A stretch of DNA of 64,000 nt, taken from NCBI GenBank assembly GCA_019828565.1, contig JAHDYR010000008.1, forward strand, positions 186,001 through 250,000, read 5' to 3'. How positions within the stretch are numbered: the first letter of the stretch is position 1; every line of letters begins with the position of its first letter. The translations under genes and the position numbers were made by a program. This stretch comes from Carpediemonas membranifera BICM (Eukaryota; Protista; Fornicata). The notes beneath the pieces are model-generated. The model was not told where the DNA came from and did not search any database. It worked only from the letters and a program-made list of their open reading frames with translations. Below are positions 22,172 to 64,000 of the stretch, one piece after another.

Positions 22172-22400
22172 TCTCGATTTCCAGGGCTATCAGGCGTCAG
22201 TCACCCCAGCCTGGCGTTGCAGCAATCAGTGGCTGTATGGTTGTGACTTGTGGTGAGGCTCGTTGGGCCAGGCAGGGTGATGGTTCATGGACTCGCAGCA
22301 ACCTAGGCAGGCTGGCCAATACCCAGGGAGAGCATGGAGGGTCGGGTTTTTACCATTCCCAGGCTACTGGGGCCAATGTTGCGGTTGTCATGAAGTATCA

Positions 22401-22420
22401 TAGAGTGCACAGTGCAAGCA
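22401..22420. repeat. 20-bp direct repeat of element A, downstream copy (putative guide position)
   Basis: Identical to 24802-24821. Starts 15 nt after the terminal TGA of the Fanzor reading frame. Confidence 0.92.
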
Positions 22421-22560
22421 CTGCGTCTCTCCACTTCAATTAGCTTGCCCGGAGGCGAAGACTAGCCGCTGGTTAGCCGTAATTGGTGTATTGGGGTTAT
22501 AGTTGGGAAGACGGGCTGGATTTCTGAAAGCACTGGCTTGATACTGTGCATCCGTCATGA
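22401..22560 (-). ncRNA. Candidate omegaRNA of element A (scaffold overlapping the ORF 3' end, plus guide)
   Basis: On the minus strand a CAATTA/TAATTG stem (22480-22485 with 22437-22442) encloses GGCTA..TAGTC and GCC-TCCG-GGC hairpins. Position is typical of TnpB/Fanzor omegaRNA. The 5' boundary is a guess. Confidence 0.45.
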
Positions 22561-24418
22561 GGCCGCAATCCAAGATGTTCTGTGCAGCAGTCTTGTCTCT
22601 GTGGGAGAGATTGAGTTAAGTGGTGGTAGTAGGATCGGAATTGAGGCGTTGCTGTCTGTACCATGGAGCACCTTGACAATTCGGGTTGTGGCATCGCATC
22701 GTGCGCCTCGTGTAGCGAGTTCTACGGAACCTCGCGCGGCAGAAGGGGCAGACGAGTGAGGTTCGGAACTCGTTAGTCATCCGCACTTCAGCAGTGATGT
22801 TGAAAGCTCTCATGTGTGCTAGTGATTCTGCAAAGCGACCATACGGCGCGCATGGATGCACCCGACGGGGCGTCTTGAATCTAGCGCTTCCGTAGAAGAC
22901 AACCAGCCTGGTGGGGGCTGCCCGGGGAGGGGCAATACTGCGAGGGAGTCGCCGAGGAGTCCATCCTAGGGTGCGAGCAAGCTGCTCCCCAGCTCTGTGG
23001 AAGTGCTTTGGACGCAAGATGTGGTTCGTCAGGCGCACTCTGCGGAAGCTCTTGACCATCCCAGCGTCGAATATTTCCTGCTCGTGGAGGAGCACAAACC
23101 TAATCGAGTTTTGTAGACTATCTAGATTTGTACTTTTGAATGACGCAGGAGTCATATCGAACGTGAAGCTGGGGGTCTTGGTGTACCCACACTTCGGGAC
23201 CACACCGGAGCTGGTGGTGCCATCTGGGTGGCGGATGAAGAATCCACCCAGAGCCCGAGCACCCGGGTCGAAACCCATGAGGTGGGCATCGGGGTCTGGC
23301 GCGGGGTGAGCATCTGCGTCATCCACACCCAGACGCTCCCGAGCCTTTCGCTTCATCGTCGGGTTGCCACTGGCACGTCTGTTGACGTATGGCAGAGCAC
23401 CAACTTGGACCGTGAGGTCCACGGCGACCCCATCTGTCTTGACAGACAGCACCCGACGGATGTTCGGAGGAAGAGCCTCCAGCTGCTCTCGCGTCATGCG
23501 CTCAGTGGCGTGATGCTCCGGGTCGACCCCAAATTGGGCAAGCCAAGCCGGGTTCAGCACGTTGAGAGAACAGGGAACGTGCATGAACCCGGGGCGGACC
23601 GGAGCCATCGGGACAAGCGGAACAAGTTTGGGGCCCGCCAGCGGCTTGTCACCCGGAAGAGGTGGATGGGCGGTGTTGAATGCCGCAACCATATCCGTGA
23701 GCTCTCCCAGAGCCGCGGAGATCCGCCAGACGCAGGGCAGCGTGAGTAGAACGCCCTCGTCGACTCGTCCCGGAGTTGAGATCTTTGCAAGGTGCTCATC
23801 AACGATCGCCTTGACAGCGCGTTGTTCGGTGCGCAACCGGGTGATGTCGTCCCGGGGCACGTCTGGATCACGCTGAGTCAGGGCAGTGTCGACCCGAGTG
23901 ATGATCTTCGCCAGGCGCCAGCAGTAACCTTCAAGGGCATTGACGAGCGACAGCTTGGTGCTCGTGGCATATTCGCCCAGCCACACGTCGAACTCGCGAG
24001 GGCACTGTTGACGAGCTGCCCTGAAGGCGGTGCAGAGGCGGATGATGAACTCGTCATGCCACAGTGGCATCTCGGCTATTGAGGTGACAACCTGCCGAAC
24101 TGCGGCGTATTTTTTCGCGCCCAGGAAGCGGTCGACGAGTGAGTCGGCGGCGAGGTTTCGGTACTCTCCACTTCGTCGGTAGGCGACGATAACGATGGCC
24201 TGGTGCAGAGCCTGGTCATGCACGGGCAAGGAGAGATTGGCGTGGTGGCAACACGCGGCGATGTATGACAGAAGGCAAGTGTGAAAGTACTTGGCCTTCG
24301 TGAACGAGCAGAGCCTGTTCTCCAATCCGGCGTAGAAGTCCGCGATGAAAGGAATCACGTTTCTACGGTTATGGAGAACGGAGGATATGGAGAACTTGAC
24401 CGTATAGATGCTGGTCAT
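22436..24418 (-). pseudogene. Fanzor1-like RNA-guided RuvC nuclease (~660 codons) with one in-frame TAA
   Basis: SVKTDGVAV, RuvC-I MGFDPG, VVFYGSARF, RuvC-II plus zinc finger NEFRTSLVCPFC...RCHNPNC. After TAA (22616-22618) the same frame continues LNLSHRDKTAAQNIL (RuvC-III) to TGA at 22436-22438. Confidence 0.88.
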
Positions 24419-24801
24419 GCGAAGCTCTGCGTTTTGCGGTGAATGAACCGATCACTTGTTAACAACACACATCAAAGACGACAGACGTTTAATGAACGAG
24501 ACTATGCAGTGATAATGGCGAGAATTAGAAGAACTGAAGTGTTTTATCTTCAGGCAGCGGCATAGAAGAGCCCGCTGTGCGATGGAAGGCCATGGTGATG
24601 ATTGCAAGGACGTCATGATCAAGACCCCGAAATCCGACAAGCGGAAGAGAGCGGATGGAAGTAAGATGGGGTAGACGATAGGTGGGAAGCTAGTTGCTTG
24701 GCGAGAGGACTGGAGAAGCACTGATTGATGACCCCCGACGATGATGACTGACTATCGAAATATCACTCTCAAGAAGAAGGAAGAGGGAGAGCGGGAAGGG
24801 G

Positions 24802-24821
24802 TAGAGTGCACAGTGCAAGCA
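24802..24821. repeat. 20-bp direct repeat of element A, upstream copy
   Basis: Identical to 22401-22420. Preceded on the element (minus) strand by TTTAC. Confidence 0.92.
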
Positions 24822-24909
24822 GTAAAGTAAGACTCTCAATCGTCTATAGCAGACTTCATGTCAACTTGACGCAGGTTAAGCATCGTCTGTCCGGAGTGGA
24901 CCACCATGC

Positions 24910-25683
24910 ATGAGTACGGCCCTACAGGCCTACGTCTCTCATCTAAGGGTGGAGAAAAGCTCCTATGGGCAATATTATCGCGAGAACTGGTCTGCGATGC
25001 TCAAAGACGAAGTACGATGCCTGCCGAAGCCAAACTTCCTTTCCACTGTCCAAAGAGGCTACATTAAGCCATATATGAGACACACAATTATCGAATGGCT
25101 CTTCTCTGTCGCCCACCGTCATCTCCTCGAGGCCCAGATTGTCGCCCGCGCCACCAACTACATCGATCGCTACCTCTCGGCCATCGCCGTCAACCGCCAC
25201 AACTTCCAGGTCCTTGCACTGGCTTCTCTCTACCTAGCAGGTAAGATGGACCGGGTTGCGAGCGTCCCCCATCTTTCTCTCGAGACCATCAGCGGCGTGA
25301 CCGAGACGGACGTCTGGTTTGCTGAGCGATCGATTCTAGAGACGTTACGGTGGGATATGGCTGCAGTAACACCGCATATGGTGCTGGCGAGGGTGTGCAA
25401 CGTCGTCTCCGACCCTGCAGCCGCTGCCGAGCTCTTCGTCAAATCCGCCACCTACGCCAACGTCGCCCTCCTCCGCTACGACCTCAGCTGGGCCCCTGCC
25501 TCCGTCATAGCAGTGGGCGCTCTCATCTGTGGGGCAGCCGACCTCGCAGTCACCCTGTCCTCGATCAGTGCCCAGCTGAGAGGGCTCGGGGTCGACGTCG
25601 ACAGAGCTGAGTCCGTGGCGGAGGTGCTGAGGGAGGTCATGGAGGAGTCCAGTCAGAGTGGATCGGCCTGTAGCGTGAGTTGA
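24910..25683 (+). CDS. Cyclin
   Basis: Cyclin box MRHTIIEWL...ATNYIDRYLS...FQVLALASLYLAGKM...ERSILETLRWDM...TP. Confidence 0.9.
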   Translation: MSTALQAYVSHLRVEKSSYGQYYRENWSAMLKDEVRCLPKPNFLSTVQRGYIKPYMRHTIIEWLFSVAHRHLLEAQIVARATNYIDRYLSAIAVNRHNFQVLALASLYLAGKMDRVASVPHLSLETISGVTETDVWFAERSILETLRWDMAAVTPHMVLARVCNVVSDPAAAAELFVKSATYANVALLRYDLSWAPASVIAVGALICGAADLAVTLSSISAQLRGLGVDVDRAESVAEVLREVMEESSQSGSACSVS

Positions 25684-25995
25684 GTCAGGGAAGACTGTGG
25701 ACTTGACTCTGACTCTGACTGGGGGCTTGGAATTGTAGGTATATGGTGTATATATGGTTGGCAGCATTAATAGTGGCCGATGTACATAAAGGGGCCGCAT
25801 GACATCACTGCACCATTCTCACCACCGTCACCCATTGGCCAGTGGGCCGACCCAGTCAACCCGCCGAGTCCAACAACTGTGGCTTCAAGGCAGCGCTGTA
25901 TGCCAGCTCTCACCACTGTTTGACTGGCAGATGGGGGTTCCAACAATGGGCTGTCTGTGAGATCGCGGGAGATCGCCACCTCACACGACACAAGA

Positions 25996-27087
25996 ATGGG
26001 GCAGCACAGCAACAAGCCTATAGACGACACAACGGAGCGCATTGAGCGAGTATCAATCAAACCAACACATACTGGCCCGCTGAGCTCGACGGTGGACGAC
26101 GCTTTCGTGGAAAAGTGCCAGAACATCCTTCTAGCCGGTTCGTGTGGCGATGCGCTCGGCAAATGGACTGAATTCGTCCCCACATTGGACGCTATTGAAT
26201 CCAGTTGGCCAGGAGGCCTCCGTGGTTTTGATCAGGTCGAACGCCGCCTCCATGGAGCCCCGCCGCCATACACTGATGACACGCAGATGAGCCTGCTTGT
26301 CCTACACACGCTGATCAAGATGCGGAGGGAGCAGAGCGATATCAACTTGATCTGCACATCACTCGCCGAGGCATTCGCGACGACTTGGCTCGACGACCCA
26401 CAGACTCCCTCAAGAATGCCTGGCAACGCCTGTCTCTCAGCTTCAAACCTCCTACGTGAACGTCTCCCGGCCCGACCTGACCCGGCCTGGTGGAAGGCGG
26501 GGGCGCCCGGTGCTGGGGGGTGCGGGGCCGTCATGCGGGCCTACCCCTTCGCCCTCGTGTACGCGGACCAGCCCGAGTTCGCGGTCAGGGCGGCAGCGGA
26601 GCATGGTACGATCACCCACGGCGCGGCACTGTCTTCTGCGGCGACCGCGGCCTTTGTCGCCGGTGTGCTGGCCGGGATCCACGGCAAGGACTGCCCCGCC
26701 ATGGTCACAGCGATGGTCCAGGCCGCTGAGACGTACGACCACGAGACCGCGGCGATGATTGAGTCTGCCGCTGCCAAGGGGGCCGACCCATCAATCACCC
26801 AGAGCGCCGTTCTCGGGTCAGACAACAGCAACCCCTTCCCCGGCCAGCTCAGGGGGTGGGCTGGACACGAGGCAATCGCTGCGGCTGCCTTTCTCCTCGC
26901 ACGCCACGGATCCGACGCTGAGGCCGCCGTGGTGGCTGGGGCAAACACCCCGGGCGATTCGGACTCCATAGCATCCGTAGCGGGGGTTCTCAGCGCTGCT
27001 GCGGGCGGGGTGATGCCTGAGAAGTGGCGGGCAGTGGAGGGGTCCGGGGAGATCGCCCAGCTCGTGGAGGAAATGATCAGCGCATAG
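25996..27087 (+). CDS. ADP-ribosylglycohydrolase (ARH/DraG family)
   Basis: GDALG, YTDDTQM, GCGAVMR, ITH and GDSDSIASVAG motifs. Confidence 0.9.
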   Translation: MGQHSNKPIDDTTERIERVSIKPTHTGPLSSTVDDAFVEKCQNILLAGSCGDALGKWTEFVPTLDAIESSWPGGLRGFDQVERRLHGAPPPYTDDTQMSLLVLHTLIKMRREQSDINLICTSLAEAFATTWLDDPQTPSRMPGNACLSASNLLRERLPARPDPAWWKAGAPGAGGCGAVMRAYPFALVYADQPEFAVRAAAEHGTITHGAALSSAATAAFVAGVLAGIHGKDCPAMVTAMVQAAETYDHETAAMIESAAAKGADPSITQSAVLGSDNSNPFPGQLRGWAGHEAIAAAAFLLARHGSDAEAAVVAGANTPGDSDSIASVAGVLSAAAGGVMPEKWRAVEGSGEIAQLVEEMISA

Positions 27088-27262
27088 GCGTTTAAAGCAG
27101 TGTTGATTTGTTCTCGAGCCAGGATGAGTTTTGGAGCGATTGAATGGAACTAGTGTAGTTGAGATCTGATTATTTGATCGGATCTGTAGATTGGATTACA
27201 GTGCAGGTTTGCGACCGACGTTCTGCGACGCACGGAGCATACAGACGCTCAGCAAAGCACGA

Positions 27263-27835
27263 ATGACTTTTACCGACTGGTTAATGAATGCGCTGGCCTT
27301 TTTAGGCCTCTACAATAAGAAATGCAAGCTAGTCTTCCTTGGCTTGGACAATGCCGGCAAGACGACGCTTCTACACATGCTAAAAGATGGGCGCTTGGTC
27401 CAGCACAAGCCAACTTATCACCCCACAAGCGAGGAGATCCGTATGGGCAAGATCACCTTCTCTGCCTTCGACCTCGGAGGGCACAAGGAGGCCCGCCGCA
27501 TCTGGCAGGACTATTATGCGCAGTGCGACGGGATAGTGTACATCGTGGATGTCGCCGACGTGGAAAGAATGCACGAAGCCTGCGAGACATTACAGGAGTT
27601 GCTCAGTAACGACATTCTCGCCCGCGTCCCAGTCGCTGTTCTGGGGAACAAGGTCGATCGCCCAGAAGCCTGCTCAGAATCCCAGTTCTTGCACTCACTG
27701 GACATCAGGCCGACTGGGAGACAGGTGCCCAGGTCAGCCATTGAGGGTGACCGACCGATTGAGGTCTTCATGAGCTCCATTCTACGGAAATGTGGATATG
27801 CAGAGGCATTTAGATGGATGGCCCAGTATGTGTAG
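27263..27835 (+). CDS. SAR1: Sar1 small GTPase (COPII)
   Basis: FLGLDNAGKTTLLHMLK, QHKPTYHPTSEE, FDLGGH..ARRIW, GNKVD, RPIEVFM and GYAEAFRW. Confidence 0.96.
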   Translation: MTFTDWLMNALAFLGLYNKKCKLVFLGLDNAGKTTLLHMLKDGRLVQHKPTYHPTSEEIRMGKITFSAFDLGGHKEARRIWQDYYAQCDGIVYIVDVADVERMHEACETLQELLSNDILARVPVAVLGNKVDRPEACSESQFLHSLDIRPTGRQVPRSAIEGDRPIEVFMSSILRKCGYAEAFRWMAQYV

Positions 27836-27955
27836 ACGATGGGGGTGAGCTGGGTGCTGGTAAATGATCTTTTGGCGATGGCAATCAGCATGTCAGAACT
27901 GTCAGAAGTAAACTGCGTCGACTCTGCTGTCAAACAAGAAGAAACTGAAACTGAA

Positions 27956-28144
27956 ATGACTCACCCTGTTGTTGACCCCGATAAGTGCATTGGCTGCGGT
28001 GGATGCATTGATGTATGCCCTGAAGAGGTCTTTGGCACCGAACTGATTGACGATAAGGCTGTGGTCCAGCATCCGGACGCTTGCTCTGCCGTCGAAGCCT
28101 GTGTGGAAGCGTGCCCTGTCGAAGCTATCACTCTCGTCGACTAA
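27956..28144 (+). CDS. Bacterial-type dicluster ferredoxin
   Basis: 62 aa. CIGCGGCIDVCP and CSAVEACVEACP. Confidence 0.9.
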   Translation: MTHPVVDPDKCIGCGGCIDVCPEEVFGTELIDDKAVVQHPDACSAVEACVEACPVEAITLVD

Positions 28145-28515
28145 ATCACAGTTTTGTCGCTTTCGTGCTAATTACGACACTTCCTTGTGCTTGAAAAACA
28201 GCGACCACAGCGCCACAGGGCGATGTTCTGACAATGTGACAACACCATGCCCAGCTCACCCTTTGGTGAGGTAATTCGGTGCTCTGTTCACTGGTTCGAG
28301 GCTGAGAGATCAGCAGAGGGCTTCGTGGACGATGAGATGACGTTGACCAATGGATGGGAGACATGAGACGACGTCGGACGCATGGCCGGCGAGCGCAACG
28401 GGTGCGCTTACTCCCAAGCTTAGTCACAAGTGCTTTCCATCGCCGCTCTTACCTTTCCCGCTCCATTTATGCTTCGAAATAAGTAACATGTAATGATCGC
28501 CAAATTCCAACGCAG

Positions 28516-29880
28516 ATGGAAGGCTCTCTTCCACTGGTGAAGCCTGGAGCTTCTTTGAAGCTGGAATCGCCGATGAAAGTACGACCGCAGACTGCAGCCA
28601 GTAAGATAGGCTCTCTCCAGTCTCTCGATGGCGAGAAAAAGCGAATGATGCGAACAAATCAGACGTTCTCGCAGCAACAGATCTCCAAGCTCGAAGGGGC
28701 GCTGAACAAGCTCAAGCATGCATTCGACATGGAGCATGCGGACAATTTGCGGCTTCGGAAGGAGCTGCAAGATCACGAAATTGAACATCTCGCCCAGATG
28801 CGGAGCGTCGGCGGCATATACGCCGGTGACAGACGCGACAAGGCTGTCCAGAAGCAGATTCAAGATCAGGCCGACAAGATCGAGCAGATTATGGCGACGA
28901 ACAGTCTGCTGCTCGCCGAGAGTCGCCGTCTCAAAGATGAGCGCGACAGCGCCAAGAGCGAGCTCAACAACCTCAAGGGCATCCTCAAACGCAGCGACCA
29001 GGAGCTAGCCACCATGAAGCGCGAGCTAGCCAGTGTGAAACGGCAGTACGACCAGGTCGTGGTTGACAAGGAAGTCTGCGCGGGTGAGGCGAAGCTTCAG
29101 ATGCAGCGGTTCGAGAAGGAGAAGGAGCTGTGGCAGTCTGAGGTCCGCGAGATGAGGCAGCAGCTCGAGAGTGTCCGCCGGGTGAACACGCTGGTCTCGA
29201 GCGCCACCAAGAAGATCGGCAGCAGAAGCTCGTCCGCCGCCTCCTCCCTTGGTGCCCCTACTACCATCAGCAAGCGTACAGAGGAGATCCTGTCCCGTAT
29301 CATGGGAGACAGCGCCACTGACATCAACACGGGTCTGCTCAACTACGTCAACGAGCTCACTGTAGACCATGAAAAGCTCTCGAAGGCCATGGAGGTGAGC
29401 AACGAGACCATCAGCCGACTCAAGGTACAGGCGTCGGGCGACAGGAATGGGACGCGGCGACTGACTAGAATGCTTGAGGATAAGCTCTCGGCGTCAGAGA
29501 GCTTGGCACGGTCGCTGGCAGCCAAGGAGCAGGCCTCTGAGGCGCATAGGAGAGCAGCGCATGCGAGTCTTGACAGAATCGCCACCACTCTGCGCCTGTT
29601 CGAGTCCGACACAGAATTCAAGACTGAGCGGTCGACCCCAAATGACTCGTCCATCATGCTCCTCCTCGGCCTGATCGAGCAGTATGCCGCGGGTGTTGGG
29701 TTCAAGTCTGTCGATGCTGCGGGGTCCAAGGACACGATGACAGCGAGTGTGCTGGCAAGGGTGTCTGGGACACTCAGTCGCAGTGCTGAGAGGGATCCAG
29801 AGGCCACCCCGAAGAGGATCATGAGTCTGGCTGAGCATCGGGCGAACGTCAAGGATAGTCTGGCAGATTTGCGGCGATAG
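28516..29880 (+). CDS. Coiled-coil protein of unknown function
   Basis: 454-aa ORF rich in heptad E/K/Q/L segments. Confidence 0.7.
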   Translation: MEGSLPLVKPGASLKLESPMKVRPQTAASKIGSLQSLDGEKKRMMRTNQTFSQQQISKLEGALNKLKHAFDMEHADNLRLRKELQDHEIEHLAQMRSVGGIYAGDRRDKAVQKQIQDQADKIEQIMATNSLLLAESRRLKDERDSAKSELNNLKGILKRSDQELATMKRELASVKRQYDQVVVDKEVCAGEAKLQMQRFEKEKELWQSEVREMRQQLESVRRVNTLVSSATKKIGSRSSSAASSLGAPTTISKRTEEILSRIMGDSATDINTGLLNYVNELTVDHEKLSKAMEVSNETISRLKVQASGDRNGTRRLTRMLEDKLSASESLARSLAAKEQASEAHRRAAHASLDRIATTLRLFESDTEFKTERSTPNDSSIMLLLGLIEQYAAGVGFKSVDAAGSKDTMTASVLARVSGTLSRSAERDPEATPKRIMSLAEHRANVKDSLADLRR

Positions 29881-30100
29881 GTTGGGTGGCCGTTGGTTTG
29901 ATTCGACTTTGGCTGATAGCCCGTTTCCCTCATATTTTATTGACTTTTACTCAGTTTGCTCCATAAACTTCCCGGAGATGATCACCGAGATGACGGATAC
30001 ATGCTGAGAATGAAACCTTCGCCACTGGTCAAGTGAAGGGTCAGCTTCAGCGAGACACTGGCCAGATCCTGTTAGTCTTTCAAGGAGCATTGGGGGAACA

Positions 30101-30907
30101 ATGTTTAACCCGGCCGCGACTATACTCGGCCTCAGCAGTGCAGTAGGCCATGTAGTTGCCTCGGCGAGGGATTCATTGTTCCGCAGTCAGCTTGAGTTCG
30201 TCGAAAAAATCGCCCCATTTTCGACAATGAGCTTGTCAGGCAGTAGAATCGATATTGAATACAAGAGATCGCCGAAGCTGCTACTTAGCGGCAGCGGGGA
30301 TGCTATCGTGTCCCCCGGACGGCGTCTCCGTCCATCTTATTCCTCTCATACAAGCTCCTTCATTCAATCCTCGTCCTCTAGCGACACAACACCCTCTAGA
30401 ACATCAAATGGAACATCTTCTTTTGTTGCCCGATCCCCACATGCGCCTATGACCACGACCAGCACCGACCAGCTACAAGCAATCCTCGACAAGGCGACGG
30501 CCGCCATCCACGAGAACCTCTACGCTACATCCACAGGCATCAGACCACTGTCAATCAGGGCCCAGCCATCGAGCACGTCCTCTTCACTCCCCGAGTTCCA
30601 TGTGTCTCCCGTGAGGGTGAGTTCAGTTGGTGTGGAGAGGAAGACGAGGTCCCCCGCTGAAGCACGGAGGACTAAGCAGCCGGTGCATGCTCAGTTCAGC
30701 CCTTTCCGGAAGTCTGGAACACCTGATCCGTCTATACGACTCACCAGAAATCGCCAGGCTTCGTCTCCCACTAGAAGTGTCAACGGCTCGCTGCTCATAT
30801 CATCCAGAGATGAACATGAAGCTGCTGCACTGCTGGGCTCAACTGTAGACAGTGGAGACGAGTGTTCACTGGACGCCGTCTTGTTCGAGCACGAGTCGGA
30901 GGATTGA
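30101..30907 (+). CDS. Hypothetical Ser/Thr-rich disordered protein
   Basis: 268-aa ORF that fills the intergenic space. No recognisable domain and the start is uncertain. Confidence 0.5.
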   Translation: MFNPAATILGLSSAVGHVVASARDSLFRSQLEFVEKIAPFSTMSLSGSRIDIEYKRSPKLLLSGSGDAIVSPGRRLRPSYSSHTSSFIQSSSSSDTTPSRTSNGTSSFVARSPHAPMTTTSTDQLQAILDKATAAIHENLYATSTGIRPLSIRAQPSSTSSSLPEFHVSPVRVSSVGVERKTRSPAEARRTKQPVHAQFSPFRKSGTPDPSIRLTRNRQASSPTRSVNGSLLISSRDEHEAAALLGSTVDSGDECSLDAVLFEHESED

Positions 30908-31201
30908 GCTTGCGACGGTTGGAGTGTGGATGACAATAGCCGTTGCAATGGTCAGGCAGGCGAAGCGTGGGTGTAAACTAGCTGGATGCAGCAGGATTGG
31001 ATCGGTCAACTTGATTTCTTCAATTGATCCTTTCATTTTTGACGTCCGAAAGAGTGTCTGCCTTCCATCCATATATGCACGCCAGACCCCTTTTCATATT
31101 CGCACCAAATCGTCATAGATCCGCCGATTCCGAATCAGATCCGCGTGCAAAACCCGCGAGGATCCTATACGCCCATTCCGAACAAAGCACGGCCGCACGG
31201 A

Positions 31202-32704: not shown

Positions 32705-32955
32705 ACGTGCTGATGGCGGATTTTTTATTATTATTGCAGCTAAATTTCGTCCTTCGTTGTTGATTGACGAGACTCGCCTCTGGGCGAGTCGAATTTGAGA
32801 GCAGAATGAGGGCAAGCACGCTAGCCATGACAAGGAACATGCATTGAACCACCCTTCATATTCTTTTGAGTCCGCCGGAAGATTGGCACACTGACTTTGC
32901 GCAGTCTTGAACACGCGCACTTTCACCCGCCAAACACGAAAGCACTGAAAACAAC

Positions 32956-33306
32956 ATGATCGCCTCTTACGAACACATTATTGTTATCAAAAACAAACTT
33001 TCAGTACTAGATCCTACAGAGAGCTTCCCCGCTCTTTCCCAGAGTGAGAAATGCGTCCATCTCCTTGGTAACATCTTCCAGGAGCACAACGGAACCATTC
33101 TTTCACTAGATCCCGAGCTCACAGACACCGATGAGCCTGTGGAAGTGGCAGAATGCGGCCACTGCTGCTCCATGACGGCCTGCGTCTCCTGCTCCGTCTG
33201 CGGACGCCACACATGCCTCGCCTGCGCCTCGTCGTGCTCATGCTGCATGGATGTCTGCTGCCCACACTGCAGCACGGCTGGTGTGTGCCACGACTGCTCG
33301 GATTGA
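32956..33306 (+). CDS. Small Cys-rich zinc-finger protein (Siva-like)
   Basis: C-terminal array of six CxxC pairs (CGHC, CSVCGR, CLAC, CSCC, CPHC, CHDC) with spacing that recalls Siva. Confidence 0.55.
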   Translation: MIASYEHIIVIKNKLSVLDPTESFPALSQSEKCVHLLGNIFQEHNGTILSLDPELTDTDEPVEVAECGHCCSMTACVSCSVCGRHTCLACASSCSCCMDVCCPHCSTAGVCHDCSD

Positions 33307-33640
33307 CTCCCATTCCGCACTTTACTCCATTCCGCGCAAAAGCATGCCAACCTTGTCATCTCGAAAATAAAGCATTCCAGAAGCCCGTATTCCCTTCAGT
33401 CCTCTTCTACCAGCCTCAAGGTTGACCTGGTCTGGCATTCGAACGAATAGACCACATGCTCTGCCACTGCCGCCCAGCCACAGCCTCAACGTCCAGCCGA
33501 CACAGTGCAGCGACACCTCTGTATGCTCCTGAATCATCAACTCTTCGATAACTACCTCCGCACCCCATTCACAATATACTATAAGCTCTAGCTACTTTAC
33601 CAAGAGGGTGCCTAGTCACCAGTACGTCCCACCACATGCC

Positions 33641-35557
33641 CTACAGCACCCAGTGCTGGTACTTCTGATCAGTCAGGTCTGCCTCGACCCCGGCCTTGCT
33701 GAGCTCTTTCACGCCATACAGCCGACTCGCTCGGTCAGCCTTTGGCACATCCTGGCATCCCATGGCGGTAAACGACACGAGAGCCTCATAAAGCTTGCCC
33801 CGGCCCAGCATGTCCCGGGCTACAACCAACGCCATGTCCCACCGATCCGCAGTCGAGCCTATAGTGATCGCAGACGTCTCCGATGACGGTATCAATCCGT
33901 GCTGGACGAACTGGTGTAGTTGATAGAATCGCCCAGAGCGTACTAGGAGCTCGGTGAGTTGCCGCATAACCTCGTGGCGGACGGGGAGACCGTGGCGGAC
34001 CATTGACGAGATGATAACAACAACCACACTTAAAAGGTACGCCGGATCTTGAGTCGTGTTCCGAGATAATCTACCGACCAGCTTTGAGATGATGACCTGT
34101 CCCGCGTCACTCAACCGAGGTCTTGCCGGAACCGGAGGCTGGGCGTACGACGGCGATGTGACGACCGCCTTCATTGCCCTTCCCAGCGTCGTCTGTGGCG
34201 AGACCAGCTTGGCCAGTGGCGAGGCCAGTGCGGCTGCTGGTCTAGACGGGGGAGGGGGCGACTTGAGCTCTGTGTGTCTGAGCGGCATCAGCGATCTTAT
34301 GGCCGCAATGACGGAGTGCAACGGCGCATGGGAGTCGACTGCTTCTGAGAGGATGTCTACGATGTCCCCATGTCGTTGAGGACCGCGCATTAGGACGAAC
34401 ATCACTCTCACGTGCAGCTGGGAGAAAATGTGGTGCCGTAACACCGCTGGCAGTGAAAGACGGACTAAGCAGACAGTTCCGGCGGCCGCGTCATGAAACA
34501 AGTCAGGCCCGAGAAGCCTTCTACCGGGTGTTGGGGGTCTGGTCGAGGGGCATATAGCCGTCGTCATCGGCCCCGCAGTCATCGCTGGGATAACTGGGAG
34601 ACACGACCGGAGAGACATCGGGGTGTCCTCCACGACGTCCAGTTTCTCATCCCGTGGGTCGAGTCCATGGAGCGCGGCGGTGACCCTTGGGTCGAAGAGG
34701 ACGACGGACTCATGGGGCTCCGAGATGACGGCGATGCACTGCTCAACATACATAATGTGGGTCGCGCCGGGTACTCGGTGGCGCAGGAGCACGGGGCGGG
34801 GTACAGTCTGGGCAGCCTCTTCTATGACGTAAATATAAACCTTATCGTGCCCGAGAACGAGAAGACGAAGCTCAGGGGAGTCGGACCCGTCGAGCGTGGT
34901 GCTGCCCTCGTTGGTGGGCTCGGGCAGCGAGAAGCTCAGCTTCTTGGCCTTCGTCAGCTTCCCAGTGATGTTATCGACGAGGATGGTCGCCACCGACTGG
35001 CTGAATCTATCCGAGAAGACGAGGATGCGGCGACTGGGGGCGTGGTAGAGATAGCGGTTCACTTTCAAGGCTATGGACGAGTCGTGGACGGGCTCCGCGT
35101 GCGCTGAGATCCTAAACATCGAGATGCCCGCGCTGCTAATCACCGCGAGCCGGTTTCCATCGATCCACTCAAGTCCGATAAGCGTGCTGCCGTTCTTGTA
35201 CCTGATAGTGGCCTTCCAGTGCTGGCTGTGGCCTCCTATGCTCACTGTGTCGAGCTGGGAGTCCGCAAAGGTCACGAGGAGCTGGGAATCATCGGCGACG
35301 CCGTACGCTATGTACACTCCGTTCGGATCTATGCTTGCTACGTTCGAGGTACACCCGCATTCGTGGCTAATGATCTTCTGGCCGTCGGCTGTGTAGAAAT
35401 GGGCGGTGCCCGAGGGATAGAGGACTGATATGATCTTTGTGGCGTTAGAGTAGTTCACGATCGTGTTGCAGACACAATTTGTGCAGCACTTGGTGCTGAT
35501 GAGAGGTTCGGCTGCCAGTACGCTCGTTATCTTGATCGCACTCGCCGTACTCGCCAT
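33641..35557 (-). CDS. RMC1: RMC1/Mic1 (regulator of MON1-CCZ1) homolog
   Basis: N-terminal beta-rich region and C-terminal Mic1 motif LVRSGRFYQLHQFVQHGLIPSS...ARDML. Confidence 0.78.
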   Translation of the reverse strand: MASTASAIKITSVLAAEPLISTKCCTNCVCNTIVNYSNATKIISVLYPSGTAHFYTADGQKIISHECGCTSNVASIDPNGVYIAYGVADDSQLLVTFADSQLDTVSIGGHSQHWKATIRYKNGSTLIGLEWIDGNRLAVISSAGISMFRISAHAEPVHDSSIALKVNRYLYHAPSRRILVFSDRFSQSVATILVDNITGKLTKAKKLSFSLPEPTNEGSTTLDGSDSPELRLLVLGHDKVYIYVIEEAAQTVPRPVLLRHRVPGATHIMYVEQCIAVISEPHESVVLFDPRVTAALHGLDPRDEKLDVVEDTPMSLRSCLPVIPAMTAGPMTTAICPSTRPPTPGRRLLGPDLFHDAAAGTVCLVRLSLPAVLRHHIFSQLHVRVMFVLMRGPQRHGDIVDILSEAVDSHAPLHSVIAAIRSLMPLRHTELKSPPPPSRPAAALASPLAKLVSPQTTLGRAMKAVVTSPSYAQPPVPARPRLSDAGQVIISKLVGRLSRNTTQDPAYLLSVVVVIISSMVRHGLPVRHEVMRQLTELLVRSGRFYQLHQFVQHGLIPSSETSAITIGSTADRWDMALVVARDMLGRGKLYEALVSFTAMGCQDVPKADRASRLYGVKELSKAGVEADLTDQKYQHWVL

Positions 35558-35724
35558 CACGGTCGTTGTCTGCCCACGAGAAAATTTAAATGGCGGCGAT
35601 ATGCGGATCTGAGAGCCTGGCATCTGCCAAGTGCATAGTTTGTCGCCCAATGGCTGCGCTGGGCTCATTTTGCGAATTCGCAGGTTATGTTTGCGGACAT
35701 CGGACTTCGGCTGTCATTCAGACA

Positions 35725-36461
35725 ATGTCGGCCAATATTCGCCAGGATGTCAGCGCGTTTGTTCAGTGCTTCTTTAATACTCATATAGGCGCTATAATCC
35801 CTTCAGATTCCTTGGAGATGCCATGCATTTGCTCTCCATGATCATTCTGCTTCAAAAGCTGTACAGGACAAAGAATTGCACTGGCGTAAGCCTAAAGACC
35901 AAGATCCTGTACCTCCTCGTGTTTTGCATGCGTTACATGGATCTCTTTTGGAACTGGACGAGCCTGTACAACAACTCGATGAAGATCCTGTACATTGGGC
36001 TCACCGCCACGACGATCTACCTCATCCTCGGGCCTCTTATTAACACATATGACCGTGAGAACGATACTTTCAGGCTTCTATTCGCCATTGTCCCCTCTTG
36101 CGTCATCGGCTTCCTCGTCGCTATCCCCAGGACGTTCTTCTACAAGGGCTCCCTGTCTTTCCGTCCATTCGAGGTGGTCTGGGCCTCGTCCATCTGGCTC
36201 GAGTGTGTCGCCATCCTCCCCCAGCTGTTTTTGTTGGCAAGAACGAGTGAGATTGAGTCCTTTACGTCTTCATACATTGCCTGTCTCGGCGGATACAGGG
36301 CAATATACATCCTCAACTGGATCTACCGTTTCTTCCACCACCAGAACAGGCTGTGGTATGTGTACCTGTGTGGAATCATCCAGACGGCGCTCTATGCGGA
36401 CTTCTTTTACTATTTCTTCAAGGCTAAGCTCACCAAGACCAGGATGAAGCTGCCTCAGTGA
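35725..36461 (+). CDS. ERD2: ER lumen protein-retaining (KDEL) receptor
   Basis: FLGDAMHLLS, CTGVSLKT, RYMDLF, SIWLECVAILPQLF, GGYRAIYILNWIYR and QTALYADFFYY. The main exon starts at 35807 after ...cttcag. The 5' exon and start are tentative. Confidence 0.93.
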
Positions 36462-36681
36462 TCAGGGGGTACGGGCACGAGCTTGTGTAAATGATTCATG
36501 CGAGGTCACTGAAGAACTTTGAAGGAGGGCAAGTTGGGGCCACGGTTTGGCCCCGTCGGCCCGCATCAATACGGCTGTCTTGTCTTAAGTTGTATCCGGT
36601 TAGCCCATGAAGATGGCCGGGATCTGAGGTCTTGTTGCTTGCGCTGTATGCACATGTCGTGTCGAGAACCTTTACCCGTCT

Positions 36682-37146
36682 TTACTCCACAGCGCGTTCC
36701 GCCCAGTCCTTGAGCTCCTTGTCCACGCTACGACTGCCATAGCAGTAGAAGTGGGGTGAATACACGATGGCGCCAGGGGCAAATCGCTTGATGTCGTTGA
36801 TGGCTCGCCCAATGCCGCCGCCGCCGTGCGTTACAAAGGGGATTATCCTCTTGCCCTTCCAGTCGTGCTTGGCGAGGAACGAGGCCACGGGTGGGGAGAT
36901 CGTTGAACAGTAGTTGGGGCTGCCAATGAAGACGACGTCATCCTCGATGGCGGCAACGTCGTCAACGAGCTCGGGATGGAAGTCCGATTGGATCTCCTTC
37001 TTCGCTTGCTTCACGGTAGCTCCGTAGGATTCGGGATATGGAGTCTTAAGCAGGATTCTGTGTGTAGTACCGCTGACGGCTTCAGCGATGCGCTCAGCAA
37101 CGCTCTGAGTGTTTCCAGTCTTGGAGAAGTATGCTACAAGAACCAT
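36682..37146 (-). CDS. Flavodoxin (bacterial type)
   Basis: FMN-binding YFSKTGNT, plus FIGSPNY, PPVASFL and IPFVTHGGGG. Confidence 0.92.
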   Translation of the reverse strand: MVLVAYFSKTGNTQSVAERIAEAVSGTTHRILLKTPYPESYGATVKQAKKEIQSDFHPELVDDVAAIEDDVVFIGSPNYCSTISPPVASFLAKHDWKGKRIIPFVTHGGGGIGRAINDIKRFAPGAIVYSPHFYCYGSRSVDKELKDWAERAVE

Positions 37147-37662
37147 GTCCGGCTATCTTGCTCTGTCTGGTGTGTGATGTGATTCCTGATCCATCACTAC
37201 AGCAGTGGCAAATGACCGTGAACGAGATTTTCCCCAATCCTGCGAAGTCCGCTCAAGTCACTGGGCTGGCCTGCTGATGCTGAAACGAGTCCGGCAAACA
37301 GCACGGGTTCCGTTCAGCCGTGTGAATGCGGGCATGCTGACAGAGTGAAGATGATGACGACTGTGCCTCACCTTGCCAGATCGCCTGCGCTGTTCTTGTG
37401 AACAGTGCAGCTTCTCCCTTCATTGGCGGACCCCAAAAGACCGCTGTCTAAAAATTGAATAGCTCAAACGATTCATTCATGCAGCAGCCTAGTACGACCT
37501 CAGAAACGATTGCCGCGAGGCTTGTACGGGAAGCAAACGGCATCTACTCTTAACTATCCACTAATCTCATTGACAAGATTTTGAGCACTTGTAGTCCTCA
37601 ATCTTCATGATCGAGATTGAGTCGATTCGTCTCAGTCGTGGTTGGTCCTCAGAACAACAACA

Positions 37663-38493
37663 ATGCGTGTCCTTGTTGCTTTCCTCCTTTTTGCTGCTAT
37701 CCTTTGCAAGCACCACACCGATCACTGCAGCAACGAAGATTATGACGTGATTATTCTCGTTGGCTTCGCCGCTGCTGATCAGACCTCCATTAGCTCCCAG
37801 ACCCACCTGCCTAAGGGCGTCGATGCCTTCAGCATCCACGGCTTCTGGCCCACTGTTTCCAACCCCAAGGTCCACTGCCCCGGCAACTGCGGCGGCCCCG
37901 GATTCTCTGAGTCTAAGATCGAGGACCTCAAGCCCGAGCTCGAGAAGCTTTGGCCCACCTACATGAGCAGAGGCGATGAGTCCTTCCACCAGCACGAGTG
38001 TCTGTACCCTTAGTGAGGCTTTGTGGCTCATGCTTGCCATGAGCCCTTGCAATCGCCTCACGCCCCAACCATCTTACAAAGACGAGAAGCACGGCCGCTG
38101 CGCTATCCACGGCAAGGCCGGCGCCGGTACCGACCACGCCATCACCGACGAGCGCTCCTACTTCACTGTCGTCATGGATCTCTTCAAGAACCTCGACTAC
38201 GAGAACACCCTCGCCAAGGAGGGCGTCACCCCCTCTACCACCAAGACATACGAGCTCAACGACATCCTCAACGCCCTCCACTACGGCACCGGCAAGCTCT
38301 GCACCATTGGCTGCGGCCGTGGCAACGATGGCAAGACCTACCTCAACACCATCACCGCCTGCTTCGACAACAACCTTGAGCAAGTGTCGTGTTCGCTTGA
38401 ACGCGTGCATTATGATGTCAGTTTTTCCCCACCGCAAGTATTACACAGACCTGGAAGTGCCAGGGCGACATCCACTATCTCCCCATGCCCTAA
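37663..38493 (+). CDS. Secreted ribonuclease T2, 3 exons
   Basis: Signal peptide and CAS-I FSIHGFWP. CAS-II FHQHEYEKHGRC is rebuilt by removing GT-AG intron 38000-38081. A probable second intron (38417-38448) gives the C-terminus TWKCQGDIHYLPMP. Confidence 0.88.
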
Positions 38494-38772
38494 GTCACAT
38501 AAATCGGATTTAATGATCAAATCAGGCAACCGTTGACAGCAGCACACGAAATCAATGGGAATAACCGAAAAACAAAAGAGAGCTTCGACGGAAGACGCAT
38601 ACTCTGCCTGTCCTTGTCTGCCTGCGGATGAAGAGATCCGAATTTAAGAAATTGAGAACTGAGGTGTGCCGGTGTACAGTAACCCTGCGCATCCGGCACA
38701 TGTGCTCTCAGTTGTCCCAAGCAGGTCGACTGCGCTAAAGTCGGCAGGCATTGCAGGTCACACGGAAAGATC

Positions 38773-39555
38773 ATGGGAGGCAGCATTTCTGGCTCTGTTG
38801 TGGACTCAATACTATGGCCACCGGTCGCATATAGACGTTACTATACTCTTGACGGGCGTATCCGGGACATCGTCATGCTTGATATCGACGAGGAGCGGAA
38901 AATCGCCACCAGGTTCATCTCTGGGTCTAATGATGCCAAGTACGTTATTCTCTTCTCCCATGGCAACGCTGAGGACATAAGCATGTCCTATCACTGGATG
39001 AATATACTCGCAAAGAAGCTCGGTGTCGATCTTCTGCTTTGGGACCCGGAAGGCTACGGCGCATCCACCGGTGAGCCCTCAATCAAGGCCCTAGAGCAAG
39101 GCGTGGCCACGGTTCTTGCCCATTTGAAGACGATCATCCGCCCTGACCAACGCATCGTCGCCATGGGCCGGTCGATCGGCTCATACCCAGCCTCCTTCGT
39201 TGCCAAGAGCCCGGACGTCTGTGGGCTTATCCTAGAGTGCCCTCTGGCCAGTGCCTACCGCGTGGCCTTCGGGAGTACGGGCTCGGTTCTCCCGTTTGAC
39301 AGGTACAGGGTCATCGACAACGTCCGGACACTGGAGAAACCGGTGCTACTCATCCATGGAACAGACGACGAGATCGTGCCCTTCTGCAATAGCTCGCCAA
39401 TGCTCGAGAACTCGATCAAGCGCGGATACAAGGTCCCCCCGCTCTATCTGGAGGGCGGGGGCCATAATGACCTCGAGTCCAAGTTCCCGAACGAGCTGCT
39501 GCACCGTATGAGGGTCTTTTTCGAAACGGAGCTCGTCCCGGAGATGGCGAATTGA
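38773..39555 (+). CDS. ABHD17-like alpha/beta hydrolase
   Basis: ILFSHGNAEDI, GYGASTGEPS, GRSIGS nucleophile, IHGTDDEIVP and GGGHNDLE. N-terminal MG. Confidence 0.9.
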   Translation: MGGSISGSVVDSILWPPVAYRRYYTLDGRIRDIVMLDIDEERKIATRFISGSNDAKYVILFSHGNAEDISMSYHWMNILAKKLGVDLLLWDPEGYGASTGEPSIKALEQGVATVLAHLKTIIRPDQRIVAMGRSIGSYPASFVAKSPDVCGLILECPLASAYRVAFGSTGSVLPFDRYRVIDNVRTLEKPVLLIHGTDDEIVPFCNSSPMLENSIKRGYKVPPLYLEGGGHNDLESKFPNELLHRMRVFFETELVPEMAN

Positions 39556-39931
39556 GTCCTTCCCTGTTTTCGCGTACTGTTAAAATCGGTCGCTTTAATG
39601 TATTGATGTTGTTTTATGTGTGTTGAAATGTGAGTAGGTATTACTGTGTTTCTGATGGAAAGGGCCTTTGGCTGGCTGGCAGAAGCACTGTGCATTTATG
39701 CCAAAACAACTGTGGTATTTAGAGGTTTTATGTGGAGGATTCAGTGTAAAGGTGACTTAAGCTGTCGACCCCCCTGGGATGAACTCCAGAGGACTGAACA
39801 GGTTCAGTCTGACGGCCCACCTGTCGTACACCAGAAGGGTAGCGGACATGAGGGCGTCGGCGATGGTAAGAGCGACGGTTCTGGGCGGGATCTTGGTTCT
39901 CGCTCCAGCAGAAACTAGTTTCTTGTTTTTA

Positions 39932-39961
39932 GACTCAACAATTCTAATCCTGCGCAGCACA
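39932..39961. repeat. 30-bp direct repeat of element B, upstream copy
   Basis: Identical to 41325-41354. Preceded by TTTTTA. Confidence 0.95.
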
Positions 39962-40159
39962 CTACCTCCACTCACCCACTTCAGCCCTCGTCTGTACCAT
40001 CGGGCTGTCGTGCTTTCAGTCGTCGGTCTGCACGAAAAGATGCGTCGTCTGCCGTCCATCGTCTGTGTCGAACGCTGCTGTCTTCTTTCGCGTCTGTGCT
40101 CGTCTGTTACGCGCTCATCTGTCGTCCATTGCCGCGGAGTAACAGCGCTCACCCCAGCG

Positions 40160-41210
40160 ATGAAGAGGCGCCTCCGTGTGCACGTGAATTGGTCAGCAAC
40201 CAAGAATTTGACCGACGAGCAGGTTGATAGATACGAGCGTGATCACGGCGACATCACCAAGCTCCGCAGAGTGCTCTCTGTGAAGACAGACGGGGTCTCT
40301 GTTGCTGTGACGGTTTGGGTGGGTCGCGAGAAATACCGTGGCGGTCGGGTGGCTGACCGGCCCACGTACAAAAAGGATAACAGCAACAAGCGGGCTCGGC
40401 TCGGTCAGGATGACGCCGAGGCTACTCCTGCCCCGGACATTCAAGCTCGCATGGGCTTCGACCCTGGTGCTCGGTCGCTGGGCGGCTACACGATCCGCCG
40501 CCCAGACGGGCAGAGTGTATCTGGCGTACTCGCTAAGTGTGGCTACACTGCCACCCCCTCTTTCCGCGTGAATATGAGCGCAGCATCGTTCAAAACGACA
40601 AGTCTAGAGGCTCTCAAACAGTCGATTAGGTTTGTCCATGAGAACATCGTTCAGATCATCAACGAGGGGACGAGAAAGTGTTTCCGCCGTGCGACTTCTG
40701 CCAATCACTGTCTGCGCCAGAAGCACTTCGCCCGGGCTGGACGTCAACTCCTGGATGATCTCGGCGGGCGCCCCCAGGAGCCCATTCACCGTCGCGTATG
40801 GGGCTGCACTGTTCGGTTCCGCCAGCACTCCCTCGTGTGCTCCGTACCGCCACTTTGCTCGAGCTCTTCCTGGCATCATGCTCCGGCACAACGTCGTCGT
40901 GACTGTCACGATGGTCTCCGAATTCCGCACTTCCATCGTGTGCCCATACTGCAAAGCACACTTCAGACGCGTGGTGCACACACACCGCACCATGCTCTGC
41001 CAGAATCCCGCGTGCGAGGGAGCTCCATGGCGCGTTGAACGGCTACGTCGGCATCCCGAGCAGAGAGACATACTTCTCAATCTCTCTCACCGAGATAAGA
41101 GCGCCAGCGAGAACATCCTTTGGTGCACCATCGATGCAACTTCAGATCAGATAGAGCAATCTCCTTTCCACTACGACTCCCAGAGAGGTGCTCTTCCTCG
41201 CTATCATTGA
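40160..41210 (+). pseudogene. Shortened, frameshifted Fanzor1-like nuclease
   Basis: RRVLSVKTDGVSV and RuvC-I MGFDPGARSLGG are in one frame. VAYGAALF, SEFRTSIVCPYC, CQNPAC and RuvC-III LNLSHRDKSASENIL are in the next. The frames join by removing one C from the C5 run at 40771-40775. About 290 N-terminal residues of the element A protein are missing. Confidence 0.86.
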
Positions 41211-41354
41211 CTTGCTAAGTTGAGCAAGCACGCGCTGCAGCGCGCGTGATATGCTGCGCACGATTGATAGAGTATGATGAACCACACTGCGATCCTGATG
41301 CTGCTTGGATCACTGTGTGTTTTGGACTCAACAATTCTAATCCTGCGCAGCACA
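41211..41354 (+). ncRNA. Candidate omegaRNA of element B (scaffold plus guide)
   Basis: Hairpins CTTGCT/AGCAAG (41211-41228), CACGCGC/GCGCGTG (41229-41248) and CACAC..GATCC/GGATC..GTGTG (41283-41319), immediately followed by the direct repeat. Confidence 0.55.
41325..41354. repeat. 30-bp direct repeat of element B, downstream copy (putative guide position)
   Basis: Identical to 39932-39961. Ends 17 bp before the CCDC113 ATG. Confidence 0.95.
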
Positions 41355-41371
41355 ACAACATCGCGAACTGA

Positions 41372-63881: not shown

Positions 63882-64000
63882 CTTCCTCAAGGACCAGCGC
63901 TGCCTGGTGTGCGGGTCCAACGAGCAGCAGCACGTCTACCCGCTGCCGGACGCCGTACTCAGCAGCCCCGTGGAGCTCGGGTTCAAGGTCATCGCGGCGT
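63882..64000 (+). repeat. Near-identical inverted copy of an internal segment of the RCC1-like gene (20629-20747)
   Basis: 118/119 identical to the reverse complement of 20629-20747. Begins 40 bp after the stop codon of the giant gene and runs off the window. Confidence 0.9.

Follow-up and report, generated by a model that had tools for sequence, protein, structure and literature searches.

Fanzor1 genes of eukaryotes, which encode members of a family of RNA-guided nucleases, are carried by DNA transposons of the Mariner, Sola2, MuDR, Helitron and IS4-like groups (PMC3627910, PMC10711439), and a 2026 review knows of no Fanzor-carrying retrotransposon. Here we analyze two elements with Fanzor1-like genes, E1 and E2, in a 64,000-nucleotide stretch of the genome of the protist Carpediemonas membranifera BICM (contig JAHDYR010000008.1, positions 186,001 to 250,000, hereafter the window). 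E1 and E2 are probably decayed members of two separate families, out of at least three, of non-autonomous retroelements with short long terminal repeats (LTRs). The Fanzor1-like gene lies antisense in these elements, which would be moved by the reverse transcriptase (RT) and integrase of gypsy elements.

Several described systems share parts of this anatomy. Terminal-repeat retrotransposons in miniature (TRIM) and large retrotransposon derivatives (LARD) have short terminal repeats, a purine tract, TG...CA ends and a 5-bp target-site duplication (TSD), lack gag and pol, and leave solo repeats. E1 and E2 bear all of these marks. They differ from TRIM and LARD in that their repeats are unequal (the 5' copy lacks a U5-like part), that a tRNA primer site was not found, and that the nuclease gene they carry is, between families, under purifying selection. 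CRISPR-associated transposons (CAST) also end in TG...CA and duplicate 5 bp. In the type V-K system the effector is Cas12k, derived from a fixed-guide TnpB (bioRxiv 2025.08.27.672191). A TnpB-family protein and an oriented insertion at a fixed distance are common to that system and to E1 and E2. In contrast to type V-K CAST, E1 and E2 contain no TnsB, TnsC or TniQ, no CRISPR array and no other open reading frame (ORF), their nuclease residues are intact, and their target motif is degenerate, looks protein-recognized and is shared with a gypsy element.

As in the Fanzor1 DNA transposons, the carriers are non-autonomous, the TnpB-type protein (~640 aa) has a DPG motif, an alternative glutamate and a zinc finger, and a putative structured RNA overlaps the right end. 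Unlike those transposons, the C. membranifera carrier bears the marks of an LTR retroelement, with the gene antisense to it. No TSD-derived target-adjacent motif (TAM) is present, because the TSD is five random bases. The Fanzor1 elements CRe-1/2/3 of Chlamydomonas show one-ended truncation and variable TSDs of 7-19 bp, are linked to Helitron2 and insert after TTTT (PMC3627910). One-ended truncation with variable duplications recurs here, whereas intact C. membranifera copies have TG...CA ends, 5-bp TSDs and a purine tract. Finally, Tf1 of Schizosaccharomyces pombe has its insertion positions at -9 and +19 relative to the Sap1 motif (PMC5741268), and its LTR binds Sap1 (PMC7175516). The C. membranifera elements resemble Tf1 in belonging with the Ty3/gypsy group, in base-precise insertion on both sides of a host motif that also occurs within the LTR, in promoter-proximal sites and, putatively, in tRNA-free priming. 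They differ in that the binding protein is postulated here and the families choose different sides, and Tf1 carries no Fanzor.

The direct repeats lie inside larger elements

We surveyed the C. membranifera genome (24.24 Mb, 69 contigs). E1 was read most fully, with ~30 loci aligned; E2, a third family E3 and a gypsy element G1 were read less fully, and the E2 and G1 flanks come from motif-specified pattern searches and from pieces within loci L001-L060. The features of E1 and E2 in the window are as follows.

22386..22390, plus: E1 TSD (TGTCA), first copy
22391..24858, minus: E1, family-1 element, 2468 bp, TG...CA; Fanzor sense minus, inferred retroelement sense plus
22391..22420, plus: E1 terminal repeat A, 30 nt; short 5' LTR in retroelement sense, right end in Fanzor sense
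22399-22409: copy of motif M within E1 repeat A
22391..22600, minus: candidate omega RNA (reRNA) region of E1, inferred; RNA-like contigs pile up here, fold no better than shuffles
22616..24418, minus: E1 Fanzor1-like ORF, 600 aa; premature TAA, homologous frame continues to a stop at 22436-22438
24771..24801, plus: E1 polypurine tract adjoining the 3' LTR; last 3 nt gone in a 13-nt deletion
24802..24858, plus: E1 3' LTR, repeat A remnant and U5-like part B, end ACTTCA; 61-66 bp in intact copies
24859..24863, plus: E1 TSD (TGTCA), second copy
24870..24880, minus: host motif M CTTAACCTGCG at E1, with the TSD 6 nt away and a cyclin ATG 30 nt downstream
39691..39700, minus: host motif M at E2, one base under typical length, 5 nt from the TSD
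39706..39710, plus: E2 TSD (ACAAC), first copy
39711..41354, plus: E2, family-2 element, 1644 bp, internally deleted, TGTG...CACA; Fanzor sense plus, inferred retroelement sense minus
39711..39961, minus: E2 3' LTR, 251 bp (92 bp in L039 and L046); contains the 30-mer at 39932-39961
39962..39985, minus: E2 polypurine tract, end GGAGGTAG, immediately before the 3' LTR
40133..41210, plus: family-2 Fanzor gene, broken; lacks the N-terminal part and is frameshifted near 40780-40800, pieces still show RuvC D, E and D and the zinc finger
41245..41354, plus: E2 structured 3' region, candidate omega RNA scaffold
41325..41354, minus: E2 terminal repeat A, 30 nt, short 5' LTR; motif M at 41337-41347 (plus)
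41355..41359, plus: E2 TSD (ACAAC), second copy

A reading of the letters alone, made before this analysis (the sequence-only reading), had described each element as enclosed by a long, site-specific direct repeat. The exact 20-bp repeat at E1 (22401-22420 and 24802-24821) and the exact 30-bp repeat at E2 (39932-39961 and 41325-41354) are present at these coordinates, and the chance of a 20-mer recurring inside 2.5 kb is ~6e-6. They do not enclose the elements: in the aligned E1 loci, homology between copies extends 10 bp beyond the right repeat and ~36 bp beyond the left. Nor are they site-specific. An identical 30-mer stands at both positions in nearly all E1 copies, at unrelated insertion sites, where a private repeat of 15-35 bp had been expected for each copy. 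The window repeat of E1 is only 20 bp because a 13-nt deletion took the remainder of the 30-mer.

The true elements span 22391-24858 (E1) and 39711-41354 (E2). Terminal inverted repeats, previously thought absent, exist in short form as TGAAGT...ACTTCA and TGTG...CACA, and ordinary 5-bp TSDs flank them (TGTCA for E1, ACAAC for E2). Twenty copies with the E1 left side were resolved, their duplication classes being assigned by hand and ~10 further copies not being resolvable. The TG left end with exactly 5 bp duplicated is found in 11 of these, another 4, without the first 2-3 bases, show 7-8 bp duplicated, and 5 lack the entire left end with a duplication of 6-12 bp. Duplications of 6-12 bp are thus confined to copies damaged at one end. 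As the sequence-only reading stated, neither element contains a transposase, an RT or a poly(A) tail (the genome was not searched for DDE transposases).

LTR-retroelement anatomy and a gypsy partner

Read opposite to the Fanzor strand, the layout is repeat A, body, purine tract, and then repeat A joined to part B. The tract lies immediately 5' of the 3' LTR and ends in GGTAA or GGTAG right before TG in both E1 and E2. A tract with at least 12 of 14 purines plus GGTAR occurs at 1 in 19,210 TG sites; the E2 tract, with 11 of 14, is just below this threshold. A 92-bp E2 unit consisting of A and B alone has its own 5-bp TSD (TCACC) and resembles a solo LTR. Two full, near-identical LTRs are not found, the 5' repeat corresponding to only 30-37 nt of a 3' LTR of 61-251 nt. 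Because the terminal repeats are unequal, the elements are LTR-like rather than canonical TRIMs.

An autonomous partner with matching ends is G1, a resident chromodomain Ty3/gypsy element with gag zinc knuckles, a protease and a chromodomain-like C-terminus. It was met in two loci (L037:1227-1322 and L054:3520-3615), and its 98-bp LTRs lie in pairs ~4227 bp apart. The 11 bases at the start of the G1 LTR are the first 11 of E2, and its last 9 are the first 9 of E1. The purine tract of G1 ends in the same way, and G1 also shares an insertion spacing and one TSD with the Fanzor elements (below). A perfect 10-bp palindrome begins on the last base of the G1 LTR, where a tRNA primer site is expected. 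In the corresponding region E3 has an 8-bp palindrome at the repeat edge and E1 a 14-nt near-palindrome; E2 has none that is clear. At least 150 matches to the rve integrase domain occur in the genome. The suggestion in the sequence-only reading of an RNA-templated route with a helper in trans gains support as a reading of how E1 and E2 move. G1 itself may be the helper.

Part B is hypervariable. Its two alleles are scattered over a poorly resolved tree of the element bodies (5 changes, vs 5.2 when shuffled), and sister copies with an identical internal deletion bear different alleles. The idea that part B is taken from a helper's U5 by identity proved unsupported, since 29 of ~37 allele-1 ends precede E1's own repeat. 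The E1 U5 allele also occurs without the usual repeat A at C13:711523, C13:716974 and C63:303054. The two C13 copies lie 5451 bp apart on the same strand and perhaps form the LTR pair of a parent or helper element.

Insertions are placed to the base beside a host motif

Insertions of these elements adjoin an 11-nt motif in host DNA, CWTAWHSTGCN (motif M). Of 17 E1 left flanks, 15 have its TGC at exactly -15, while right flanks show no motif; all 20 resolved E1 copies, two of them read manually, have their right junction at M+7. At E2 left ends M stands in reverse complement: 43 of 48 ends, a few being duplicated flanks, have NGCA 16-18 nt (mostly 17) upstream, and only 2 have the E1-type spacing. 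E1 thus inserts 6 nt 3' of M and E2 ~5 nt 5' of M, and at three M sites both sides are taken. A 2.08-kb tandem array contains three E2 left ends whose flanks are identical (C8:930999, 933080 and 935159).

G1 uses the E1 position. Its U5 end lies 11 nt from TGCR in 6 of 6 matches (10-14 window; ~10 outer ends), and at one site G1 and E1 stand in tandem with a common TSD, GGGAC. Each right end of the Fanzor elements itself contains M, and for this reason the elements stack on each other. Targeting of one family by a guide RNA from the other was considered and dropped: the two motifs are reverse complements, and the prediction that follows from this for the remaining E2 ends held.

M is also a feature of the host. 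The core CWTAWHSTGC occurs 11 times in the window vs 1.7 expected, and 8 times inside genes vs 1.1 under synonymous shuffles; M is enriched 5-7x in host DNA away from elements. The window sites (1295, 24871, 28884, 34841, 35680, 49689, 51018, 55811, 58754, 60264 and 62443) lie near start codons and every 1.3-4.8 kb within a 15-kb ORF. Several element copies lie 10-40 nt from start codons. This pattern suggests that a host protein bound to M tethers integration. In this organism, which lacks the origin recognition complex (ORC) and Cdc6, M is a candidate site of a general DNA-binding factor.

The proteins carry the Fanzor signature

The two diverged RuvC/zinc-finger ORFs named by the sequence-only reading are present in the window (22616-24418, minus; 40133-41210, plus). 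The E1 ORF reads TAA where 20 of 22 loci have TGG, and because of this premature stop the window copy lacks the RuvC-III aspartate. The E2 ORF is an internally deleted, frameshifted relative. Protein matches in the genome number at least 79 and fall into three families, E1, E2 and E3, with ~45-55% identity between them. The aspartate of the RuvC-I DPG is kept in all 33 covering records, and FDPG is nearly invariant. Glycine occupies the canonical glutamate site, with a YG strand upstream, and an alternative glutamate stands about six residues before the zinc finger (EFRTSLVC or EDRTTVVC, 24 of 25 records). A CxxC...C zinc finger and the RuvC-III aspartate follow, the latter in HRDK in 22 of 23 records. 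This pattern of DPG, alternative glutamate, zinc finger and aspartate is the published Fanzor signature (PMC10711439). Between families the rate of nonsynonymous change (dN) is 0.41-0.46 and that of synonymous change (dS) ~1.7 or saturated, giving dN/dS of ~0.25.

By these residues the proteins likely belong to the Fanzor group. Searches with hidden Markov models (HMMs) and structures had been proposed as a check on kinship with TnpB and Fanzor. For the RuvC part, each of the ten best Foldseek rows is a Fanzor1 or a Cas12; their E values of 0.04-0.17, like those for PF07282 (0.03-0.11), fall short of significance. The AlphaFold models behind the structural comparison are poor (predicted local distance difference test of 35-42). 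Neighbors in the Atlas language-model space are TNB/DUF8286 clusters of giant viruses and algae (0.97). Protein length, the Atlas neighbors and the Foldseek rows together suggest Fanzor1 rather than Fanzor2. Searches with PDB sequences, NCBIfam and the first structure model returned nothing. No homologs outside C. membranifera were found by word-based searches, a scan of 1.84 billion representatives, or searches of metagenome and viral contigs; every named protein homolog comes from this organism. Public records annotate a family-2 Fanzor, P0011 (22 cluster members), as a cytosine deaminase, and our literature search found no paper that mentions Fanzor together with Carpediemonas.

A candidate RNA at the element end and a third family

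In E2 (z -4.4; segment 73 nt upstream) and in E3 (z -2.0), the last 28 nt form base pairs with a segment further upstream. The fold prefers the Fanzor-sense strand in E3 (z -4.7 vs -1.6 antisense) and forms on both strands in E2, and the E1 3' region has no significant fold on either strand. In an RNA-like run that is empty over an intergenic gap, contigs pile up over the last 300 nt of E1; these contigs are unstranded, flat in depth and summed over copies, and give a hint only.

E3 is found at L044:3050-3911 and L034:5027-5372, with the right end TATACTGCGCAACACA, an M-like core and a 37-nt repeat. The L044 copy, with an E1 left end, an E3 right end and one 5-bp TSD (CAAAG), may be a real chimera. 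An E1/E2 chimera at L017 was considered as an RT template switch and is better explained by a nested E2 with local recombination.

Weighing the explanations

The sequence-only reading took the 20- and 30-bp repeats for long, variable target duplications. Such duplications would be exact and would differ between two elements, as these do. The same repeat nevertheless recurs inside nearly all copies at unrelated sites, LTR-like and with 5-bp TSDs outside it in intact copies, and we give this explanation practically no weight. Cut-and-paste movement of E1 and E2 as DNA transposons akin to miniature inverted-repeat elements, by some DDE transposase, would make the inner repeat a spare right end. 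It fits the short inverted ends, the 5-bp TSD, the many internal deletions that spare both ends, and the fact that known Fanzor1 carriers are DNA transposons (PMC3627910). It leaves unexplained why a purine tract of gypsy type adjoins the inner repeat and why G1 has ends, an identical M spacing and a TSD in common with these elements. Genes for DDE transposases were not searched for, and on what was read this route is very unlikely.

Two further explanations give RNA another role, and both are improbable. Fanzor-sense RNA could be reverse-transcribed at a nick beside M, primed by the target and performed by a non-LTR helper or by Fanzor; the chance of this is slim. The always precise right end, the left-truncated and left-trimmed copies with their 6-12-bp and 7-8-bp duplications, and the RNA-like contigs that cover the 3' end of the Fanzor-sense region well would all suit it. 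Against it stand the TG left end with exactly 5 bp in most resolved copies (11 of 20), the absence of any tail of poly(A) or simple repeats, and the opposite strand to which both the purine tract and the geometry of G1 point. Alternatively, a Fanzor ribonucleoprotein with a fixed guide from the element end could pick the site, as a eukaryotic analog of type V-K CAST. Part of each family's terminal repeat matches the motif that the other family targets, and E2 repeatedly lands 2-3 nt beyond the right end of E1. The two target motifs are nevertheless one motif in reverse complement, and its fixed TGC and TA with a loose middle would suit protein binding over base pairing. M is moreover enriched in host genes, and G1, whose parts read contain no Fanzor, uses it too; the terminal repeat of E2 and E3 is part of the scaffold fold and is not free as a guide. 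We hold this guided route to be slightly less probable still.

Gypsy-driven movement of short-LTR elements, the reading we prefer, has observations against it as well. The 5' repeat lacks the U5-like part B, and standard two-jump reverse transcription would not preserve such a layout. Downstream of the 5' repeat, neither E1 nor E2 has a tRNA primer site or a perfect palindromic one. The U5 alleles are unlinked to the (poorly resolved) body tree and do not match a helper's U5 by identity, and truncation at one end with longer duplications is also reminiscent of target-primed reverse transcription. A sister gypsy subfamily with TGAAGGCTGG ends shows no M spacing at all, and no M-binding protein was identified. 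On the protein side, the Fanzor placement lacks a significant HMM or structure match, within-family dN/dS is mostly 0.4-1.6 (near neutral within E1), and most copies are broken.

A proposed mechanism and a role for Fanzor

In the mechanism that we propose, the antisense RNA would be packaged and reverse-transcribed by resident Ty3/gypsy elements, with plus-strand DNA priming at the purine tract. The gypsy integrase would then insert the cDNA with a 5-bp stagger. A host protein on M would serve as the tether, with insertion at either edge of its footprint. A cDNA with an unfinished U5 end may be joined at its U3 end only and then repaired, producing the truncations and the 6-12-bp duplications. 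Fanzor would be cargo and not the mover; no evidence was found in the surveyed copies that Fanzor itself performs insertion.

The most speculative part of our account, which we put forward tentatively and at somewhat less than even chances, is that Fanzor serves homing. The scaffold would end at the element end, the downstream flank would act as guide, the empty allele would be cut, and the filled allele would be the repair template. The fixed M spacing could give a constant, offset TAM despite the random TSD. Metamonads lack nonhomologous end joining (NHEJ) (PMC8516963), and homologous repair would be favored for this reason. The full combination is doubtful: an active homing Fanzor with a flank guide and a TAM in M, 5-6 bases from the protospacer, together with an unequal-LTR carrier that replicates by non-standard strand transfer. 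In that case, integration tethered by a host factor would guarantee an empty allele that can be cut.

Other features of the window

The window is gene-dense, with ordinary genes. An 815-bp direct repeat (7306-8120 and 8467-9281, 99.9% identical) lies in a WD40-plus-kinase gene and is either a recent internal duplication or an assembly artefact. An intron-free ORF of 5151 aa at 48387-63842, with FG-GAP and ephrin/TNF-receptor-like cysteine repeats, probably encodes a giant surface protein. A stretch of an RCC1-like gene recurs in inverted orientation (20629-20747 and 63882-64000, 99% identical), with one copy at the edge of the window; the window holds three RCC1-like genes. At 36682-37146 lies a flavodoxin-like gene of a family common in bacteria.

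Implications

Three Fanzor families that kept their catalytic residues through near-saturated synonymous divergence, in carriers marked as LTR retroelements, challenge the view of the 2026 review. The proposed role gives a concrete, testable idea for an organism that lacks NHEJ: an offset TAM and homing on empty alleles. Through the base-precise targeting by gypsy, an 11-nt host motif also comes to light across the genome of an organism that has neither ORC nor Cdc6.

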